DNA of 64,000 nucleotides, from sequence record MW825358.1. One strand, written 5' to 3'. Below the pieces are notes generated by a model that saw nothing but the letters and a program-made list of their open reading frames with translations, searched no databases and was not told where the DNA came from. Position 1 is the first letter of the stretch, and every line of letters starts with the position of its first letter. The position numbers were made by a program, and so were the translations under genes. Below are positions 55,744 through 64,000 of this stretch, piece by piece.

Positions 55744-56463
55744 ATGTTCGAACCCAAATCCTACCTCGAAGAACGTCTGGCTCTGGCTGAGATCTTCCAG
55801 CAGTCGCTGGCGCAAACGCTGCTGGCCGTCGTGCCGCGCGAACAGCGTCCGCAGATCCAGTACCTCTTCGAGCACTACGGTCGCAGTCAGCAGCTGCTGC
55901 GTGACAAGGAAGCCAAGCGTGTCGTGGGCGAGCCGGTCCTGGAAGAAGGCGTGGCGTACCTGGACCAGACCAAGCTGCTGGAGTATCTCAAGGCCAATCT
56001 GGGTCGCACCTATTTCGGTACCGAAGAAGAAACCGGTGCGCCGGATGGCTCGATCGGCACCAAGGGCTTTGGTACCAAGTTCGCCGACTGGCTCAAGAGT
56101 CTGCCGGATATGGACAAGTCCTTTGCCAAGAACATGCCGTCGGGTTTCTACTCCGACGTCAGCCGCGGTGCTCCGGCCCCAATTTTGGTGCTGAACTTTG
56201 GTTCGCGCCTGTTGATCGCCGGCTATCACGTGTACCTGGGTGTGTTCAGCATTTACCTCGACCACGTCCCGGCCGACTTCAAGTGGGAAATGGAAGACAA
56301 GCGCGCCCTGCGTGGCGAGGCTGTGACCTATTTCAACGACATCAAGCTGGGTGACTTTGAGACCGAGTTCCTCAAGGCGATGTCCGCTCAGGGCATTGGC
56401 GAGATCAAGATCCCGCAGGCCCCGGCTGCAGCTGAAGCCACTCCCGAAACCTCCGCTGAATAA
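55744..56463 (+). CDS. Hypothetical protein, highly codon-biased
   Basis: ATG at 55744 (MFEPKSY); codon usage similar to the capsid gene. Confidence 0.72.
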   Translation: MFEPKSYLEERLALAEIFQQSLAQTLLAVVPREQRPQIQYLFEHYGRSQQLLRDKEAKRVVGEPVLEEGVAYLDQTKLLEYLKANLGRTYFGTEEETGAPDGSIGTKGFGTKFADWLKSLPDMDKSFAKNMPSGFYSDVSRGAPAPILVLNFGSRLLIAGYHVYLGVFSIYLDHVPADFKWEMEDKRALRGEAVTYFNDIKLGDFETEFLKAMSAQGIGEIKIPQAPAAAEATPETSAE

Positions 56464-56497
56464 GCGGGGGTTCCCCTCTTTCATCAGCGAGTAAGAC

Positions 56498-58030
56498 ATG
56501 AGTCTTAAGAACCATTTTAAGAAAGCCCCTAAGATGCGACCACAGCTCAACATTGGGTCGGTCTTTGATATCCCCAACGGTCGATACTATCTGGGTAAAC
56601 ACGGGGAATCGGTCCTCAATGGTGGTGTGGCGTTTTTCACCGGTGTGGCCGGACGTGGTAACACGTTCAAGTCCACCTTGATGCATTACATGACCTTGGC
56701 GATCTTGGATCGCTATTCCAGTAGCGTGAGCAACATCTACGATACGGAAATGTCCTTGACCGCTGAGCGCATGTATCAGCTGGCCCAGCACATGGACAAT
56801 ATCGCCGGGGTGGATCTGGAGGCGGAAGATCGCATGCTGATCACCGATTCCACAGCAATGATGGGTGAAGAGTGGTTTGATGCACTCAAAGCGCACGGGG
56901 CAGACCTGATCAGTAAGGAAAAGATCAAGGCCAACACCCGCACCACACCTTTCATTAATCATGAAACCGGTGGGTTCTTTACTTCGATCGCACCCACGGT
57001 GGTGGAGATCGATTCACTGTCCATGCTTACCACCACTGCAGTCCAGCAGGTCTTTGACAAGAGCGAGATCGGCGATAGCTCCACCAACATGAGCGCTATG
57101 ACCGATGCGCGCATCAAGACGCAAATGATCAACCAGTTCCCGGCCTTCACCGCCGCGCACGGCATTTACGTCATGACCTCTGCCCATGTGGGCAAGCAGC
57201 ATGTGATGGACAAATACGCACCGCCTGCCAAGCAACTGATGTTCTTGAAGGGCGATAACTCTTTCAAGAATGTGCCGGAGAAGTTTTCGTTCCTGACCAA
57301 CAACTTGTACTTTGTCCATTCGGCAGAGATTTTGCTCAATGCCGACAAGTCCGGATGTGAGTTTCCCAAGGACAGCGATGACAAGCGCAAGGGCGATACG
57401 GATCTGCAGTTGCTGACCGTACAGAACCTGCGTGCCAAGTCCGGTCCGACGGGTATGCCCATTGAAGTGATCGTCTCTCAGAACGAGGGCGTCCACATGG
57501 GCCTGACTGAGTTCAACCTGATCAAGAATCTGGGGCGCTTTGGGCTGGATGGTAACATGCAGAACTATGCACTGACCTTACTGCCTGATGTCTCGCTCTC
57601 GCGCACGACGGTGCGTGGGAAGCTGGATAACAACCCCAAGCTGCGTCGGGCCATGGAAATCACCGCTGAGCTAGCCTACATGTACAACTTCGGCTACCGT
57701 ACGGAAAATACGGTGGACAAGCCGGAGGCTCTGGGTGAGGAAGAAGTCCTGGATCGCGATCTGTCCTGCACAGCCAAGGAACTCTACGAGGACCTGAAGG
57801 CTAAAGGTTATGATTGGGATGTGTTGTTGGCCACCCGTGGGTATTGGGTGTTCCAAGAAGACGAGAAGGATCGTCCCCCGTTCCTGTCCACGATGGATCT
57901 GCTGCGCATGCGAGCCGGGCTCTATCATCCGTATTGGATGCCCAAGCCGACTCCGGCTACAACCGACCAGAAGGTCAATGACGCCATCGCAGCGATTGGC
58001 GCCAAGGCCAAGAAACCTGTTACCGCGTAA
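56498..58030 (+). CDS. uvsX: UvsX/RecA-like recombinase (phiKZ gp152-like)
   Basis: Walker A GVAGRGNTFKST, YDTE, Walker B VEIDSLS, SAHVG, RAKSGPTG. Confidence 0.88.
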   Translation: MSLKNHFKKAPKMRPQLNIGSVFDIPNGRYYLGKHGESVLNGGVAFFTGVAGRGNTFKSTLMHYMTLAILDRYSSSVSNIYDTEMSLTAERMYQLAQHMDNIAGVDLEAEDRMLITDSTAMMGEEWFDALKAHGADLISKEKIKANTRTTPFINHETGGFFTSIAPTVVEIDSLSMLTTTAVQQVFDKSEIGDSSTNMSAMTDARIKTQMINQFPAFTAAHGIYVMTSAHVGKQHVMDKYAPPAKQLMFLKGDNSFKNVPEKFSFLTNNLYFVHSAEILLNADKSGCEFPKDSDDKRKGDTDLQLLTVQNLRAKSGPTGMPIEVIVSQNEGVHMGLTEFNLIKNLGRFGLDGNMQNYALTLLPDVSLSRTTVRGKLDNNPKLRRAMEITAELAYMYNFGYRTENTVDKPEALGEEEVLDRDLSCTAKELYEDLKAKGYDWDVLLATRGYWVFQEDEKDRPPFLSTMDLLRMRAGLYHPYWMPKPTPATTDQKVNDAIAAIGAKAKKPVTA

Positions 58031-58047
58031 GGCCATTGGCGTAGCTG

Positions 58048-58464
58048 ATGGCTGACCTTAGTCCCTGCCTTCCATACGGGCAGGGACTTTCATTTCCTGA
58101 GATCGCCATCATGTCTCCGTTTAATTGCCAAAGCCCGGTCACCGCCGGGGTGTACACGGCCTTGGCCTCCATCGACGTTTCGGTGGCCTTTCGCTTCCTC
58201 CAGCAGTACCAAGAACCCAACGCAGCTAGCACCGATTACCACCTCAGCTCGGTCAATCGCTTCTGGCGCGAACAGCTCGGTTATGCCGGGGAAATGTTTG
58301 ACACCCTCGATGCACGCGCGTACCTGATTGATCGGGTCCAGCTGCACGATTGGCTGCGCATGTTTGCCATTCACGTCGCTCCGGTGATTGTGAATTTGAA
58401 CCTGCCCCAACGCTTGCCCGAGGCCGGCCCCAGTCTTGACTTCGGTCAGTTCCAATTTGCTTGA
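58048..58464 (+). CDS. Hypothetical protein
   Basis: Co-oriented ORF after uvsX; exact start uncertain (alternative ATG at 58111). Confidence 0.6.
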   Translation: MADLSPCLPYGQGLSFPEIAIMSPFNCQSPVTAGVYTALASIDVSVAFRFLQQYQEPNAASTDYHLSSVNRFWREQLGYAGEMFDTLDARAYLIDRVQLHDWLRMFAIHVAPVIVNLNLPQRLPEAGPSLDFGQFQFA

Positions 58465-58466
58465 TA

Positions 58467-58510
58467 GCATAAGTCCCTCTCCTGGCTTTTTAGTAAGCTC
58501 AGGAGAGGGA
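58467..58510 (+). terminator. Long hairpin with upstream GCATAA
   Basis: tccctctcctg...caggagaggga with an inner gctt/aagc stem. Confidence 0.6.
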
Positions 58511-58539
58511 TCTTGTGTACTGTCTTTAGGAAAGATGTC

Positions 58540-59205
58540 ATGAGTAACCGTAAAGCAGCCGAAGCTGAGGCCTTGGCATGGATTGAACAGCTGGTCCCAG
58601 GCGGCCAGTGTGTGGCAGATACCAAAGCTTTGTTTGCTTCAATGAGTGATGCCCAGTTTGAGACCTATATGGCCAAGCTGGAAAGCGGCGAGGAGATTCT
58701 TTCCATTGCCGTACCCAATCTGGGGACTGATCGTTTAGAGCTTGAGCGCTTGTTGGACTTAGGACCTAAGTTGGGCCATAGTTTCTTTGAGCAGCTGTGG
58801 CTGACAGATGCCAAAACGGGCACGACGTATCTGACTCCTGAAAAGTACTTGGTCATTGATCTGCCGCTGCGCCGTCAGCAGCAGCTGTTGACTGAGAAGA
58901 TCTCCATTCCAGATAACAACCGGCACGTGGATGAAATGACCGGGCAGGTCACAGGTGATTCTAAGGGCGCAAGTCTGTCGCTGCCTGAGATCCAACTGCT
59001 GCGCTCTCAGGGATTGGATCGACCCATCTTGGAGGCCATCAAAGTACGCGGCGGCGATCATCGCGCTTTCCGTGCGATTGACCGGCAGATCATCGAAACA
59101 GGCGGGGCGAGCTTGGATAGCGTACTGGGTGCAGGTACGCGAGTGAAATCCACCGAGTCGCTGGCCACATTGTTCAAGGGCATGCATCTGTCCACTAACT
59201 TGTAG
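58540..59205 (+). CDS. rpoB: Virion RNA polymerase beta subunit, C-terminal part (phiKZ gp149-like)
   Basis: LPLRRQQQLLTEKIS...DEMTGQVTGDSKGASLSLPE...EAIKVRGGD beta C-terminal switch/clamp motifs. Confidence 0.85.
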   Translation: MSNRKAAEAEALAWIEQLVPGGQCVADTKALFASMSDAQFETYMAKLESGEEILSIAVPNLGTDRLELERLLDLGPKLGHSFFEQLWLTDAKTGTTYLTPEKYLVIDLPLRRQQQLLTEKISIPDNNRHVDEMTGQVTGDSKGASLSLPEIQLLRSQGLDRPILEAIKVRGGDHRAFRAIDRQIIETGGASLDSVLGAGTRVKSTESLATLFKGMHLSTNL

Positions 59206-59211
59206 TGTGCT

Positions 59212-59754
59212 ATGACTGAAACTGCTGCTTACTTTAACCTGCTGCAAGTTCAGCAGGATCTTGATATTGAAATTGCCGCACAGCTCGACTACCACCAACT
59301 GTCCGATGAAGCCTACGATGACCTGCTGGCTTATCTGCTGTCAGATGCGCAGGCCGTGCGCTTTTATCTACACAACGATGCCTTCACTGTAGGTGAGACC
59401 TGGAAGGTCTTGCGCATGAATGAAGTTGCCATGGATGTGGTGATGGATCTGACCTTGTCCTTGCAGATGATCTGTCGGGCCCAGCATCAAAATGGTTGGA
59501 GCCAGCTGGTGGAGATCTACAGTGAAGCGGTGGGGTGTTTGCGCAAACACGAAGCTGACAGCAGTGCTTTGAAAGATGAGGAAGAGTTGGAGATCTTTGT
59601 CACTCCTTCTGAGGCCAAGGAACTGGTTATGTGCAATCCCTGGCTACTGACCTTGTACATGATCCGGCGTTCCAGTGCCATTCGGCGTTTGTTGTCCAAC
59701 TTGAAGGCAGCAGGCAAGACCTTACCCAAATCTGCTAGTGCGGCGGCCACATGA
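59212..59754 (+). CDS. Hypothetical protein
   Basis: Operon member; NPWLLTLY motif. Confidence 0.7.
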   Translation: MTETAAYFNLLQVQQDLDIEIAAQLDYHQLSDEAYDDLLAYLLSDAQAVRFYLHNDAFTVGETWKVLRMNEVAMDVVMDLTLSLQMICRAQHQNGWSQLVEIYSEAVGCLRKHEADSSALKDEEELEIFVTPSEAKELVMCNPWLLTLYMIRRSSAIRRLLSNLKAAGKTLPKSASAAAT

Positions 59755-60560
59755 GCTTTAAGACCGAAGAGTCGGTGATCTATGTGGAATTAGATGCCTT
59801 GATGGATACACGATTGCCGACCCTGGGATTGATTTCCTCCCAGGCGGCCGTGGAGGCATCGACCGACCCGCGCTACTTTGAACGGGTCATTGATGACTTT
59901 GAGCCGATCTGCGGGATTAGTAAGGATACTTTCCGGACCTTGTATGCCAAGCGCGATACCGAGATCCTCAAAGCCTCTGTGATCACGGAGATGGTCTTCA
60001 TCTTAGACGGGATCGTGCGGCAGCTGGAAGAAGAGGCGCGCTCTACACCGTTTATCTCCCGCGTGCGCGTCGAGGTCAACTATTACCCTTACGTCTTAGA
60101 TGAAGGCGAGCGCGAAATGATAGCCACGGCGATCATGGCCCGCTGTGGGGTGGAGACCTTGGTCGAGCTGATTCGCTTAGATCCCTCAGTGATCACGCCC
60201 ACGCGTTGCCGGGATCGGTACTCAGGGATGATCCTGTACAACTTCCATGACTGGATGAAACACCATCTGAAGGCCTTTGAGAGCGTCAAGATGCCCCGCG
60301 TCACCGTGGTGGCACCTGCGCTCTACTACGACGTTGTACCGGCCTCAGATGCGTTTGTAGAGGACGGGCTGAGCGAGCATATCACCGCCTTTGAGTTGGC
60401 CCGCGTAGGTATGGTGGAAATGTTTGCTTTGGACCTGCTGCCTGCGGCTAACTTCAGCATGGCCCGCGTTCCTGGGCAATACACCTCTAAGCCTAAGCCC
60501 GAAGTACCTGTGATTGAGGTCGCCCCACGGCAAGCTCCGCGGCAACGCGAAATCAAATGA
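59751..60560 (+). CDS. Hypothetical protein (VYVELDALxDTR N-terminus)
   Basis: ATGA overlap; N-terminal beta strand plus ELD resembles a degenerate HAD motif I. Confidence 0.7.
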   Translation: MSFKTEESVIYVELDALMDTRLPTLGLISSQAAVEASTDPRYFERVIDDFEPICGISKDTFRTLYAKRDTEILKASVITEMVFILDGIVRQLEEEARSTPFISRVRVEVNYYPYVLDEGEREMIATAIMARCGVETLVELIRLDPSVITPTRCRDRYSGMILYNFHDWMKHHLKAFESVKMPRVTVVAPALYYDVVPASDAFVEDGLSEHITAFELARVGMVEMFALDLLPAANFSMARVPGQYTSKPKPEVPVIEVAPRQAPRQREIK

Positions 60561-60562
60561 CG

Positions 60563-60599
60563 CCATAGACCCCCTCCCGTTTGGGAGGGGGACGTATGG
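60563..60599. terminator. Bidirectional terminator, CCATAG/TATGG flanked
   Basis: ccccctccc-gttt-gggaggggg. Confidence 0.75.
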
Positions 60600-60602
60600 T
60601 CT

Positions 60603-61088
60603 TTACTTCTTGTTTTCGTCAAACAAAGAGTCAAACGGAATCTCTTCGATCTGAACACTGGCCTCACCGGGCTTAAGCTCCAGCGGCTGCAGGTTCGAGG
60701 CATCTGAGATACGCGGTGCCTCACGACGCACCGTTCCTTCAATAGGCGCCTGCATGGGACGATCGCCCAGACGTTCCAGGGCACGCGCCACCGCAGCCAC
60801 CGCTTCACGGTCAGCCGCAGACTCTTGAGCCCTCGCACCAATCTGCTTTTGCTTGATGGCCTGGCTATCCAGATCCTTGAGCATGACGTGAACCAGCTTT
60901 TGCTCATCAAGATCATCTGGTAGCACACCGCCATTGGCTTCCAGTTTGTAGGCAATCTGACGCAGACGAATCTTGCGGGTATACGCAAGCAGTTCGTCCT
61001 CGTTCATGTCTGCGATCTGGTCAATATCTGGGACCCGCTTGATAGGGGCGAGCCCGTTGGTTTCTTCGTGGCTCATAGCCGCCTCCAT
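60603..61088 (-). CDS. Hypothetical protein
   Basis: Convergent on the terminator; start may be the ATG at 61076. Confidence 0.68.
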   Translation of the reverse strand: MEAAMSHEETNGLAPIKRVPDIDQIADMNEDELLAYTRKIRLRQIAYKLEANGGVLPDDLDEQKLVHVMLKDLDSQAIKQKQIGARAQESAADREAVAAVARALERLGDRPMQAPIEGTVRREAPRISDASNLQPLELKPGEASVQIEEIPFDSLFDENKK

Positions 61089-61266
61089 GTAAAAAAATCA
61101 CAATCACATATTATCATGGTGTAAGCAAGGCCAACGAAAAGCTTCCCGAGAAGGCAAGCTGTCGATTAATTTTTACCAAAAGTCCTTATTTTAGAAGAGC
61201 AGCAGATGTCACGACTTACGTACATCTGTTTTCTCTGTGTGCCGCCCTACCAATAAATAGATACTT

Positions 61267-61827
61267 ATGTCAATCCTCAGTCGCCTCGTGACCCGCTATC
61301 GGGACTGGCAGGCGCAGCGTCGAGAAGCGCATTGGAACCATGACATTGACATGCATTTGAAGACCCACGATAACCCGTTTGATCCTACCGGGATTGAACT
61401 GGCCGTGACTCACCTCAAAGCGGTCAAACTCACCGCTGTTCCAATGGCTAAGCGCCGCCGCCTCCCCATTGCCGCCTTCAGCTCCAACATTGACGAGTTC
61501 CTCGTTAAAGTCCAATACTGTACCCGCCTGATCGAAAACCGCGAAAGCATTCCTCAATCCTTTTTACCTAACACGAAGAAGCTCTATCGTCTTGACGATT
61601 TCTTCGTGACGGGAGAGGGGCATATGGTCGCAATTGAGAAGATCGCCCCGACCTTGATTACCCGTTTAGAGCAATTTGTCGCCGCTATCAGACAGCATGA
61701 GATCCTTCAGCTGGAAGAAAACGAGAAGATGAAAGATCTCAGTGGCTACTATCAACGCAAGCTGTTCCCGCTTTACCAGGACTGCTACTACATCGTACAA
61801 GCTGTCCACGCAACCACGTTTCGTTAG
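61267..61827 (+). CDS. Hypothetical protein
   Basis: ORF after an AT-rich divergent spacer containing aatttttac (61168-61176). Confidence 0.65.
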   Translation: MSILSRLVTRYRDWQAQRREAHWNHDIDMHLKTHDNPFDPTGIELAVTHLKAVKLTAVPMAKRRRLPIAAFSSNIDEFLVKVQYCTRLIENRESIPQSFLPNTKKLYRLDDFFVTGEGHMVAIEKIAPTLITRLEQFVAAIRQHEILQLEENEKMKDLSGYYQRKLFPLYQDCYYIVQAVHATTFR

Positions 61828-61871
61828 TCCACCTTCCCGATCCGCCAATCGGGCCTACCAACGAGGTACCA

Positions 61872-62474
61872 ATGTCCTTTAATCGAGAGGATAACTTCCT
61901 CAACGAAGCCAACAAAGGCGTCGATAAAGCCAGGGGTGTATTGGCCGTGCTGTTTCGACAGCTTTTGGCCGTACGCGGGATTGACCCCTGGCGCTGGGAT
62001 ATGCTCATTCGAGACTACCTGGCCGATCCGCGCAACGGCATCCCCAACAACTCCCGCGACCGTTCCTCGGCCCGCGGTAATCTGAACAAGGAGCTGTTCC
62101 GCCCGGACATGACCTGGCGGGTGTTTCTCAAAGCCATGAACTTCCTCAACCTGGTCCGCGTGAGCTTTACGGTCAAGGTGCAGTGGAATGATGGTACGGT
62201 CAGCGAAGTCACCGCCCGACTCAAAGACCGTGCACGCTTTTCCCAGACCAGCGACCTCCCGCCGGTGGTCAATGATCTGGACAAGCCTGCCCTGCCCCGA
62301 CTGCCCGCCATACCCCGTCCAGAGCGTGCACCTACACCTCAGATGGATCTGCCCATGCCTGGTCTGGGTGGGCCTGGAGAAGAGCGAGATGAGGAAGATG
62401 AGGACCTGGATGAGAATGATGAAGTCGAAGAATCCAGCGTCACCCATGACCGCCCCTTCCTGCTGCGCCGTTAA
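61872..62474 (+). CDS. Conserved phiKZ-family hypothetical protein with acidic tail
   Basis: GVLAVLFRQLL...W.MLIRDYL.DP.N...RGNL.KEL...MTWRVFLKAM.FL motif; RBS gagg. Confidence 0.72.
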   Translation: MSFNREDNFLNEANKGVDKARGVLAVLFRQLLAVRGIDPWRWDMLIRDYLADPRNGIPNNSRDRSSARGNLNKELFRPDMTWRVFLKAMNFLNLVRVSFTVKVQWNDGTVSEVTARLKDRARFSQTSDLPPVVNDLDKPALPRLPAIPRPERAPTPQMDLPMPGLGGPGEERDEEDEDLDENDEVEESSVTHDRPFLLRR

Positions 62475-62482
62475 GGAGTCCC

Positions 62483-63229
62483 ATGTCTGCTAAAGTTCGC
62501 TTTACCACCAAGATCTTCGATCTGGAAGAAGACGGTCAGAGCTTCATTGCCATCTCCTCTCGCGGTAAGACCCGCTTAGGGCGTGCCTTGGCCGCAGGTG
62601 CAGGTTGGCAATTGTTGGTCCCTGGTTATGGTGGCTTCACCAGTCTGGCGGGGTTAATCCGCTTTATGGCTGGGGACCAACGGGGTGTCAATAAGGTCAT
62701 TTGTGGCGCTGACTACGACGATGCTCTAACCGAGTCGGTCAAGTCGGTCTATGAAGAGCTGGTAGTGGGTTATGTCCGTGCGATCTTCTCCTGTCCCCGT
62801 GGGCAGGAGCTGGGCCTGCTGAGGTTGCTGCATGAAAACCCCCTACCCTTTGCCATCGTCTACAACATAGATGATGACTGGGTAGCTAGCAAACCCGCGC
62901 CCTGGTTTGAAGAAGCGCTCAACGAGTTGTATCGCGGTGGCAATGGACAGGCCTCAAGCCCTGCGGGTTTGTCCAATCCACATTTCCTCCAATGGGATCC
63001 CTCTGAAATCGATAACAAGGATCCTGCCTTTATCCGAGCCCTTGAAGGCTTTGATGAACTTGAAAAGCAACACGGCACTGTCGGTGCGTTGGAGCAGGTT
63101 TTGGCTAAACCTGTTTTCAAGGATCTGTCCAAAGAAGAACGTAATGCAATGATTCGGACCTACGTATTGTCCGTCACGGCAGATCCTGCAACCACCCATC
63201 AGTTCATTCCACCCCCGTCTGAGAAGTGA
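62483..63229 (+). CDS. Degenerate NADAR-like (T4 gp30.3-like) paralog
   Basis: N-terminal DGQSFIAISSRGKTRLGRAL...PGYGGFTSL aligns with DGIDHINCYSKAQTALGQQL...PEFGFFASL of the next gene. Confidence 0.55.
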   Translation: MSAKVRFTTKIFDLEEDGQSFIAISSRGKTRLGRALAAGAGWQLLVPGYGGFTSLAGLIRFMAGDQRGVNKVICGADYDDALTESVKSVYEELVVGYVRAIFSCPRGQELGLLRLLHENPLPFAIVYNIDDDWVASKPAPWFEEALNELYRGGNGQASSPAGLSNPHFLQWDPSEIDNKDPAFIRALEGFDELEKQHGTVGALEQVLAKPVFKDLSKEERNAMIRTYVLSVTADPATTHQFIPPPSEK

Positions 63230-63326
63230 TAATGTGAGTACGCACAACTCACGTTATTCTTCAAGGGCGATTTAAAGCGCCGCACTACTTTCCTCACGGC
63301 GCTTTTTCCGCCAAAGTGAATCACAC

Positions 63327-63920
63327 ATGTCCACTGACACCACCCCGCTGTCACCTTCCGATAAACCTGATCCCGCAAAGGACGGCATTGACCACATCAA
63401 CTGCTACTCCAAGGCCCAGACCGCCCTTGGTCAACAGTTGAGTAACTTCAGCCACGTTCCGTTTGATCATCCTGAGTTTGGCTTCTTTGCGTCACTGGAA
63501 GCCTACTGGTATTGGCTCAAGACCGGCATGCAGCACAACTCGCTGCGTCGCCTGTATGGGGCCACGGCCAAATCCGCTGGCATTCGTCAGTTGGAAGTCA
63601 GGATGGATGTCGAAGAATTCCATCGACTGTTCAGTGATGGCATTCGGCTTCGGATTGCCCAGAATCCGAAGTTGCGTGCTGCGGTACGCCAGTCCACCTT
63701 GCCTTTCCGGCATTACTACGTCTACGGCACCAACCCGCCGGTGGTGCGTGACCAAACGCGGATGTATTGGCAAATGGAAGTGATGGAGGAAGTGCGCGCC
63801 ACTCTCAAGCGCGATGAACCCATCAAGCTCTCAGATGGAACACCGGCTGCACGAGCAGCCATCCGTGAGGTGGAAGCCAATCCTTTGCCGGAAGCCTTGC
63901 GCTTTCCGACTGAAGATTAA
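63327..63920 (+). CDS. NADAR-family protein (T4 gp30.3-like)
   Basis: DGIDHINCYSK..T.LG..LSNF.H.PF....G.F.SLEAYWYWL..G...LR.LYG..AK..G and LPF.HYY motifs. Confidence 0.78.
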   Translation: MSTDTTPLSPSDKPDPAKDGIDHINCYSKAQTALGQQLSNFSHVPFDHPEFGFFASLEAYWYWLKTGMQHNSLRRLYGATAKSAGIRQLEVRMDVEEFHRLFSDGIRLRIAQNPKLRAAVRQSTLPFRHYYVYGTNPPVVRDQTRMYWQMEVMEEVRATLKRDEPIKLSDGTPAARAAIREVEANPLPEALRFPTED

Positions 63921-63957
63921 CTCCATCAGCGTCTGCGTTATCCTGTGTAGTGTTAGT

Positions 63958-63991
63958 GCTCTCCGGTCCCAGTGGCCGGAGAGCGTTATGC
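63958..63991. terminator. Hairpin followed by TTATGC
   Basis: gctctccggtc-ccagt-ggccggagagc. Confidence 0.6.
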
Positions 63992-64000
63992 TGCCCAGGT

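Follow-up and report, generated by a model that had tools for sequence, protein, structure and literature searches.

A predicted NADAR-fold pseudo-enzyme next to a phage-type NADAR protein at the end of the jumbo phage LucasX genome

The end of the genome of the Xanthomonas jumbo phage vB_XciM_LucasX (MW825358.1, 305,651 bp) raises the question why a phage keeps two neighbouring genes for NADAR-like proteins when the first of them appears to have lost its active site. The window, i.e. the whole stretch of 64,000 nucleotides that was analysed, is the end of this genome, with positions 56000-64000 being 100% identical to its final 8 kb. The two open reading frames (ORFs) in question are LUCX_333 (ORF1, 248 amino acids) and LUCX_334 (ORF2, 197 amino acids), which lie on the plus strand and are separated by a spacer of 97 bp. 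In GenBank LUCX_334 is labelled hypothetical and LUCX_333 is named 'assimilatory nitrate reductase large subunit', a mis-annotation for which Pfam, NCBIfam and structure searches give no support. The host of LucasX, X. citri 306, is a plant-pathogenic bacterium; the phage has a tubulin-like gene (PMC9009655), and a published PicA tree groups it with the nucleus-forming chimalliviruses (10.1101/2024.03.21.585822). An earlier reading of the letters alone, here called the sequence-only reading, had described the locus as an intact NADAR preceded by a degenerate NADAR-like paralog, and had suggested a two-gene counter-defence module in which the upstream protein reads ADP-ribose, acts as a decoy or mimics an antitoxin. 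The comparisons described below indicate a phage-type NADAR-fold protein accompanied by a maintained, presumably dead paralog, for which a protein-binding role is more plausible than the reading of ADP-ribose.

Fold and active-site residues of ORF1 and ORF2

ORF2 alone gave no match in Pfam, NCBIfam, PADLOC or PDB (phmmer), and its sole direct family matches were PHROGs 11222 and 652, both of unknown function. A profile of the ORF2 family, run against PDB sequences, retrieved YbiA (2b3w, E 0.032) and a Phytophthora NADAR (8bau, E 0.33) as its best two matches, both of them weak. The AlphaFold2 (AF2) model of ORF2 reached a predicted local distance difference test score (pLDDT) of 91 and a predicted template modelling score of 0.85, with the element order b-a-b-b-a-a-a-a-a-b-b-a. 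Comparison of this model with the PDB by Foldseek returned 2b3w, 8bau and 8bat at probabilities of 1.00, 1.00 and 0.99 and with template modelling scores up to 0.61, while the next match stood at a probability of 0.07.

The T4 gene 30.3 product (AdfN) was taken from NC_000866 and scores 237.5 bits on the Pfam model Phage_30_3. It aligns with the ORF2 family by hhalign at 88% probability (E 3e-6, 25% identity). In this alignment AdfN S18-N19-F20, E36, K43 and H123 correspond to ORF2 S39-N40-F41, E58, K65 and H129, where the equivalence of the two histidines is taken from the alignment and not from superposed coordinates. E58 and K65 also align with the Glu and Lys of YbiA, and the E-x6-K spacing on the core helix is present. 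E36 and K43 are essential in T4 AdfN (PMC11825919), and phage NADARs are marked by a His that replaces the YbiA-type Glu (PMC11125620). Judged from sequence and model, ORF2 is a NADAR-fold protein that retains the Glu, Lys and His positions by which an active phage-type NADAR is defined, and 'intact, gp30.3-type NADAR' appears a fair wording as far as these residues are concerned. The statement of the sequence-only reading that T4 gp30.3-type NADARs reverse guanine ADP-ribosylation by DarT1 is correct (PMC11825919, PMC11125620).

The ORF2-type family is found in 548 of 50,697 phage records, many of them from jumbo phages or genomes of Ackermannviridae size, and the copies are almost all labelled hypothetical. 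Other chimalliviruses contain an ORF2-type domain fused to a C-terminal DprA/SLOG-like domain, as seen in Erwinia phage RAY gp153 (L018:4977-5858) and in P0026; fusion genes of this type sit between UvsX and RNA-polymerase beta-like genes, that is, at a different position in an otherwise similar neighbourhood. A NADAR-type ORF of 419 amino acids on one metagenomic contig (L010:5035-6294) has a GIY-YIG/NUMOD3/I-TevI-type DNA-binding, homing-endonuclease-like region in frame before its NADAR-type domain, between the ORF1-type and ORF2-type parts. In Xanthomonas phage XbC2 an annotated ADP-ribosylglycohydrolase (ARG-type) gene (L017:8279-9205) lies ~3 kb downstream of the ORF2-type gene, so that two ADP-ribose-related genes stand close together.

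The relation of ORF1 to ORF2 is barely visible in a pairwise comparison. BLASTP aligned ORF1 13-76 with ORF2 15-79 at 28% identity over 65 residues (E 0.002 in a single comparison), which reproduces the colinear alignment of the sequence-only reading, except that it is not fully gapless: a one-residue gap lies near its end. The reported loss of the SNF motif and of the Glu was likewise recovered, with A37-A38-G39 in ORF1 opposite S39-N40-F41 in ORF2 and A56 opposite E58, and the later Leu-Pro-Phe motif that it had noticed in both proteins (ORF1 120-122, ORF2 125-127) is aligned by hhalign. Profile comparison gave far stronger values. ORF1 matched an alignment of 28 ORF2 relatives at 95.4% (hhalign, E 1.9e-8, 139 columns; ORF1 11-149, ORF2 13-156), and the ORF1 family matched the ORF2 family at 99.5% (E 6.6e-23, 144 columns). 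Moreover, the ORF1 ortholog of Xanthomonas phage RTH11 matches LucasX ORF2 at E 5e-11 and bridges both families.

ORF1 by itself likewise matched nothing in Pfam, NCBIfam, PADLOC or PDB (phmmer), and a word-seeded homolog search found no relative of it. An exhaustive phmmer search yielded nine representatives at 50% identity, and a profile search added a longer-form subgroup; the resulting ORF1-type family comprises 26 distinct sequences, with 17 invariant columns in their own alignment. ORF1 was folded by AF2 from this own-family alignment only, so that its fold was not imported from ORF2, and the strands and helices of the N-terminal domain followed one another as they do in ORF2. Foldseek matched this domain to eight viral predicted structures at probability 1.00 (E 6e-7 to 1e-4), which are ORF2-type phage proteins and include the RAY 'DprA-like' protein, the N-terminal part of which is an ORF2-type domain. 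The weaker matches included proteins annotated as NADAR from giant viruses and from phages. A profile of the ORF1 family returned only noise from PDB sequences, and direct similarity between the ORF1 family and AdfN was not found. Residues 176-248 of ORF1 gave no Pfam match. The C-terminal three-helix domain is kept among short-form relatives, ORF1-types occurring in short and long forms, and ORF1-types end in a short proline-containing stretch. The sequence-only reading had made itself dependent on a NADAR fold in the upstream protein, and hhalign and Foldseek both find that fold. Based on the profiles and the model, ORF1 is assigned as a paralog of the ORF2 family with the NADAR/YbiA fold, a structural relative rather than an enzyme of the NADAR kind.

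The residue columns describe what the two families share and where they part. Counts were made over 32 distinct ORF2-types and 26 distinct ORF1-types in ORF2 numbering (Table 1); the column of the canonical Lys (K65) is never K in ORF1-types. From these alignments, ORF1-types keep the scaffold, replace the polar columns that are invariant in ORF2-types, and fix new residues there. Since the scaffold is kept, the active-site columns are replaced, new residues are fixed and the family has 17 invariant columns of its own, ORF1 most probably represents a maintained pseudo-enzyme and not a product of decay. It is predicted to be catalytically dead, and the earlier description as a degenerate NADAR-like paralog is well borne out.

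Table 1. Residues at aligned columns in the two families (ORF2 numbering)
Column	ORF2-types	ORF1-types
D19, G20, T32, G35	same residue, 32/32	same residue, 26/26
F54, S56	31/32 each	26/26
H23	32/32	0/26 (Y, F, M or I)
N25	32/32	0/26 (A in all)
N40	31/32	0/26 (L, A, T or V)
F41	F, L or W	G in 26/26
E58	32/32	0/26 (G, A or S; A56 in LucasX ORF1)
W61	32/32	0/24 aligned (V, I or L)
Y62	Y in 29/32 (rest F, H)	R in 24/24 aligned
K82	31/32	1/19 aligned (else Q or D)
H129	31/32	0/18 aligned (Y, L, V or I)

Occurrence of the pair and layout of the locus

A survey of relatives, as suggested by the sequence-only reading, located the ORF1-type gene directly before the ORF2-type gene in seven of seven distinct jumbo-phage genomes, namely LucasX, RTH11 and five metagenomic contigs of 105-310 kb. 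The distance between the two genes shrinks to 17 bp in L010. The RTH11 orthologs are 39% identical for ORF1 (E 5e-39) and 56% for ORF2. The ORF1-type gene is open in six of the seven genomes; in L007 (3196-3914) it was called as two ORFs with one reading-frame change, which may reflect either two genuine genes or a fault in the assembly. ORF1-type genes are rare, with 2 of 50,697 phage records containing one, and none was found within 5 kb of the single ORF2-type gene in XaC1, XbC2, RAY and PBECO4. An additional C-terminal tail of ~35 residues was found, by pattern search and by-eye reading of C-termini, on the ORF2-type protein in 7/7 genomes with an ORF1-type partner and in 0/5 partner-less ones; it is also absent in P0021-P0028.

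In L012/L013, a syntenic but more distant relative, a lone NADAR-type gene, P0038 (L012:4001-4558), directly follows the LUCX_332 homolog, and there is no ORF1-type gene. The score of P0038 falls between those of the ORF1 and ORF2 families. Equivalents of H23, N25, E58, W61, K65 and K82 are kept in P0038, the N40 column is occupied by H and the H129 column by Y, and the gene may be similar to the pre-duplication state. In the simplest history the gene would have been duplicated once, in tandem, in the ancestor of the LucasX/RTH11 clade, and the upstream copy would have diverged rapidly afterwards. Comparison of the same phage pairs showed ortholog identities of 52-61% for ORF2, 28-39% for ORF1, 50-66% for LUCX_332, 24-36% for LUCX_331 and 38-52% for LUCX_1. 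ORF1 evolves fast, i.e. faster than ORF2, yet no faster than its intact neighbour LUCX_331. Near-identical metagenome copies, considered for a ratio of nonsynonymous to synonymous substitution rates, differ by 0-3 nucleotides, which is too few.

The spacer between the genes is structured (Table 2). A single-sequence RNA fold of 63228-63330 has a minimum free energy of -35.2 kcal/mol (z = -5.75), and 0/200 shuffles were as stable. The GC-rich hairpin, likewise seen in single-sequence folds, has equivalents at the same place in RTH11, L007, L008 and L011; it escaped a simple terminator scan on account of its 14-nucleotide loop. The 10-nucleotide core of the downstream motif (63311-63320) occurs once and at the same position in RTH11, L007 and L008/L009, although protein identity is no higher than 52-61%, and L011 shows a diverged version of it. 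The region of hairpin plus motif covers 63274-63320 of the window and extends over ~6722-6779 in L003, ~3950-4000 in L007 and ~3945-4000 in L008. The element may serve as a terminator or attenuator, as a phage promoter or as a translational operator. As a hairpin and a separate conserved motif precede ORF2, this gene may have its own control.

No ADP-ribosyltransferase domain was found in the genes around the pair (LUCX_331, LUCX_332 and LUCX_1), and a PADLOC scan gave 0 matches. The locus was considered as a DarTG1 toxin-antitoxin system and rejected as such, because a DarT1 gene would have to adjoin the NADAR gene and the neighbours lack the transferase domain. With no DarT-like toxin gene adjacent, the pair is not an antitoxin-toxin locus and is at most an orphan, AdfN-like arrangement. 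The fast-evolving LUCX_331 (61267-61827), two genes upstream of ORF1, has a weak, sub-threshold match to Pfam Imm53, immunity protein 53 (E 0.001; score 19.2 bits, cut-off 25).

Table 2. Features of the LUCX_333/LUCX_334 locus (window coordinates)
Feature	Position	Strand	Basis
ORF1 = LUCX_333, predicted dead NADAR-fold paralog with C-terminal helical domain	62483..63229	+	26-sequence family, hhalign 99.5%, AF2 mean pLDDT 79.5
ORF1 N-terminal pseudo-NADAR domain, residues 1-152	62483..62938	+	AF2 pLDDT ~84-92, Foldseek, column counts
ORF1 linker, residues 154-179, predicted disordered	62942..63019	+	pLDDT <50
ORF1 C-terminal three-helix domain, residues 181-233, no known family	63023..63181	+	Helices 181-187, 190-207, 217-233
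12-bp hairpin over the ORF1 stop codon	63228..63258	+	RNA fold
GC-rich 9-bp hairpin followed by five T, terminator-/attenuator-like	63274..63307	+	RNA fold, equivalents in relatives
12-nucleotide conserved motif directly upstream of the ORF2 start	63309..63320	+	Unique in the 64-kb window, core kept in relatives
ORF2 = LUCX_334, putative phage-type (His) NADAR-superfamily protein, E58/K65/H129	63327..63920	+	AF2, Foldseek, profiles, AdfN alignment
ORF2 C-terminal tail, ~residues 162-197, low-confidence	63810..63917	+	pLDDT 61-64 over the last 20 residues

A role of the pair in counter-defence and its alternatives

The explanation that we favour, with moderate confidence, is that an active-type NADAR eraser (ORF2) is accompanied by a dead, protein-binding paralog (ORF1). 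The pair would stem from a tandem duplication in the clade ancestor. ORF2 would then remove ADP-ribose from nucleobases, presumably guanine-type adducts of DarT1-like or other DNA/RNA ADP-ribosyltransferases, and would thereby protect the phage nucleic acid. ORF1 would no longer bind ADP-ribose or DNA and would work via protein contacts, which is the weakest step; it might stabilise or localise the NADAR as a helper, or serve as a decoy for some basic protein of the host, for example the toxin. ORF1-types are uniformly acidic (median isoelectric point of the N-terminal domain 5.05, net charge -2 to -10), whereas the median isoelectric point of ORF2-types is 8.2 and that of LucasX ORF2 is 7.0. 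Replacement of the aligned catalytic and conserved polar columns disfavours the reading of ADP-ribose that had earlier been suggested for ORF1, and the acidity disfavours direct binding of nucleic acid. Together, these properties favour protein binding, and make a helper or decoy that binds proteins more plausible than a reader of ADP-ribose. The distribution of the ORF2 tail is suggestive of a docking peptide. Localisation is a real issue for a DNA-repairing eraser in chimalliviruses, because a macrodomain anti-DarT enzyme of such phages is imported into the phage nucleus (PMC13309987), and the AdfN study proposes a phage potentiating factor for the T4 His-type NADAR. A two-gene counter-defence module is a plausible candidate reading of the locus.

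A number of observations weigh against this explanation or parts of it. Concerning ORF2, the wording 'intact NADAR' is backed by the fold, by the residues matched with AdfN and by the top profile matches, but the protein stays below the Pfam thresholds: it gave no match to PF08719 (NADAR, cut-off 35.1 bits), where the best scores of its relatives were 15.2 and 20.7 bits, and none to PF08010 (Phage_30_3, cut-off 36 bits), where the best relative reached 19.9 bits over the N-terminal 60 profile positions. As both models miss it, ORF2 belongs to an unannotated phage NADAR family. The canonical Lys column (K65, window 63519-63521) is K in only 10/32 ORF2-types and otherwise S, G or A, and the family may consequently use a different mechanism or substrate. 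K82 is near-invariant in ORF2-types; a shifted Lys or a different mechanism may be possible. Concerning ORF1, the top Foldseek match in the PDB is YbiA at a probability of only 0.63. In a neighbour-joining tree with midpoint root the ORF1-types fall outside all ORF2-types, probably through a long-branch effect, and the tree is uninformative on when the duplication took place. Concerning the pair, the flanking genes are equally syntenic across relatives, and since the whole neighbourhood is syntenic the constant position of the two genes argues only weakly for functional coupling; tail and partner occur together within a single clade, so that phylogeny confounds their correlation; and the terminator-like hairpin and conserved motif between the genes speak against tight coupling. 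T4 gp30.2 was considered as an analogue of ORF1 and rejected as unrelated (hhalign <1%), and T4 has no ORF1-like neighbour. Finally, a literature search for DarTG in Xanthomonas had no usable result that would place a DarT-type system in the host.

The alternatives differ in how much of the pair they deny. That the resemblance between ORF1 and ORF2 is a chance product could be argued from the weak pairwise BLASTP alignment by itself; this is refuted by both hhalign comparisons, the RTH11 bridge and the Foldseek matches at probability 1.00. Close to refuted, and in our view very improbable, is the proposal that ORF1 is a functionless, decaying pseudogene of a duplicated NADAR. It would account for the faster evolution relative to ORF2, the two ORFs called in one metagenomic relative and the loss of all catalytic residues, but not for a frame that stays open over its full length in 6/7 genomes despite protein divergence to ~30% identity, for 17 invariant columns of its own, for a confident fold prediction from the own-family alignment alone, or for the conserved new C-terminal domain; moreover, its rate of change is like that of intact LUCX_331. 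A more serious competitor, which we nevertheless consider unlikely, sees in ORF1 the product of an old tandem duplication that has taken on an unrelated role outside ADP-ribose biology and stands beside ORF2 by origin and general synteny. The replacement of all conserved polar active-site columns fits such a history, as do the terminator-like hairpin and separate motif before ORF2, the equal synteny of the flanking genes, the gain of a different C-terminal domain with short and long forms, and the lack of direct similarity between AdfN and the ORF1 family. Against it, the most conserved ORF1-type columns cluster at the former active-site motifs, which suggests that the cleft is still in use; the pair is never split in the seven genomes and nearly abuts in L010; and the extra ORF2 tail is present only where an ORF1-type gene is.

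The remaining alternative concerns the substrate of ORF2, which could be soluble ADP-ribose-derived signals or toxins or other N-glycosides instead of ADP-ribosylated DNA, as Iyer, Aravind and colleagues have proposed for most phage NADARs. The DprA/SLOG-like fusions in RAY and P0026, the variable canonical Lys and the neutral rather than basic character of LucasX ORF2 are in line with this proposal, and E. coli YbiA is a small-molecule N-glycosidase. Still, every tested NADAR family, the T4 His-type included, hydrolyses guanine-ADP-ribose (guanine-ADPr) on DNA (PMC11125620, PMC12945103), the His-type signature is common to ORF2 and AdfN, and the ORF2-type family is basic overall. We regard a soluble substrate as rather unlikely. 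Returning to the eraser with its protein-binding partner, the most specific version that can be formulated would have ORF1 act as an acidic adaptor that docks on ORF2, perhaps on its tail, to stabilise, target (e.g. to the phage nucleus) or gate it, or else as a NADAR-shaped decoy for a DarT-like toxin. ORF1 would then be the first pseudo-enzyme to be described in the NADAR superfamily, and the pair a two-component counter-defence. This version is speculative, and we rate it as improbable.

Relation to known systems

Phage NADARs are common, since sensitive profiles detect them in >48% of medium and jumbo phages (PMC9503650), and their anti-DarT1 role is established for T4, Bas32 and Bas60 (PMC11825919); hydrolysis of guanine-ADPr has been reported for all four NADAR families (PMC12945103). 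Since phage NADARs and this role are already known, ORF2 would be a further phage NADAR, from a family that domain databases miss, and the novelty lies in the ORF1 family and in its constant place next to the NADAR gene. Searches of the accessible literature found no description of a catalytically inactive NADAR paralog or family. The comparison extends the His-type signature to a large family that current domain models overlook, and it places a dead copy beside an active-type one in nucleus-forming jumbo phages, where access of DNA-repair enzymes to the genome is regulated. The T4 NADAR seems to need an extra phage factor for full activity; if the two LucasX proteins cooperate, ORF1 is a concrete candidate for NADAR potentiation or targeting, and if it is an adaptor it would be the kind of 'potentiating factor' inferred in the AdfN study. 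Should they not cooperate, the locus would still be a clean case of an enzyme fold turned into a phage binding module.

T4 AdfN (gp30.3) is the nearest functional reference for ORF2. Both have the same core fold class and aligned S-N-F, Glu, Lys and His positions, and both are stand-alone small proteins of large lytic phages. The relation is remote, however, as the hhalign values given above show; ORF2 has its extra C-terminal tail, the Lys is not conserved in the ORF2 family, and no dead paralog adjoins the T4 gene. Confident structural matches of ORF2 are limited to YbiA (2b3w), the Phytophthora NADAR with ADP-ribose (8bau) and the NADAR of Geobacter lovleyi DarG1 (8bat), at sequence identities of 15-19%. 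Where ORF2 has His, YbiA has Glu and DarG1 has Asp, and no DarT gene stands beside ORF2.

If ORF1 is a decoy or inhibitor, possible functional analogues are AdfA and AdfB, which are non-enzymatic direct binders of DarT, and the C-terminal domain of DarG2, which binds DarT as well; these factors show that phages pair or alternate enzymatic and binding-type measures against DarT. No sequence or fold relation between these proteins and ORF1, with its predicted NADAR fold, was found. A closer parallel in logic is offered by coronavirus nsp3, in which the active macrodomain Mac1 is followed by domains of macrodomain fold that do not bind ADP-ribose. There the fold is Macro and not NADAR, and the domains are parts of one polyprotein rather than products of separate genes, so that the likeness is one of analogy only. 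Still, the arrangement is the same as that suggested for LucasX: an ADP-ribose hydrolase together with a duplicated fold that lacks the ligand contacts and has another binding role.

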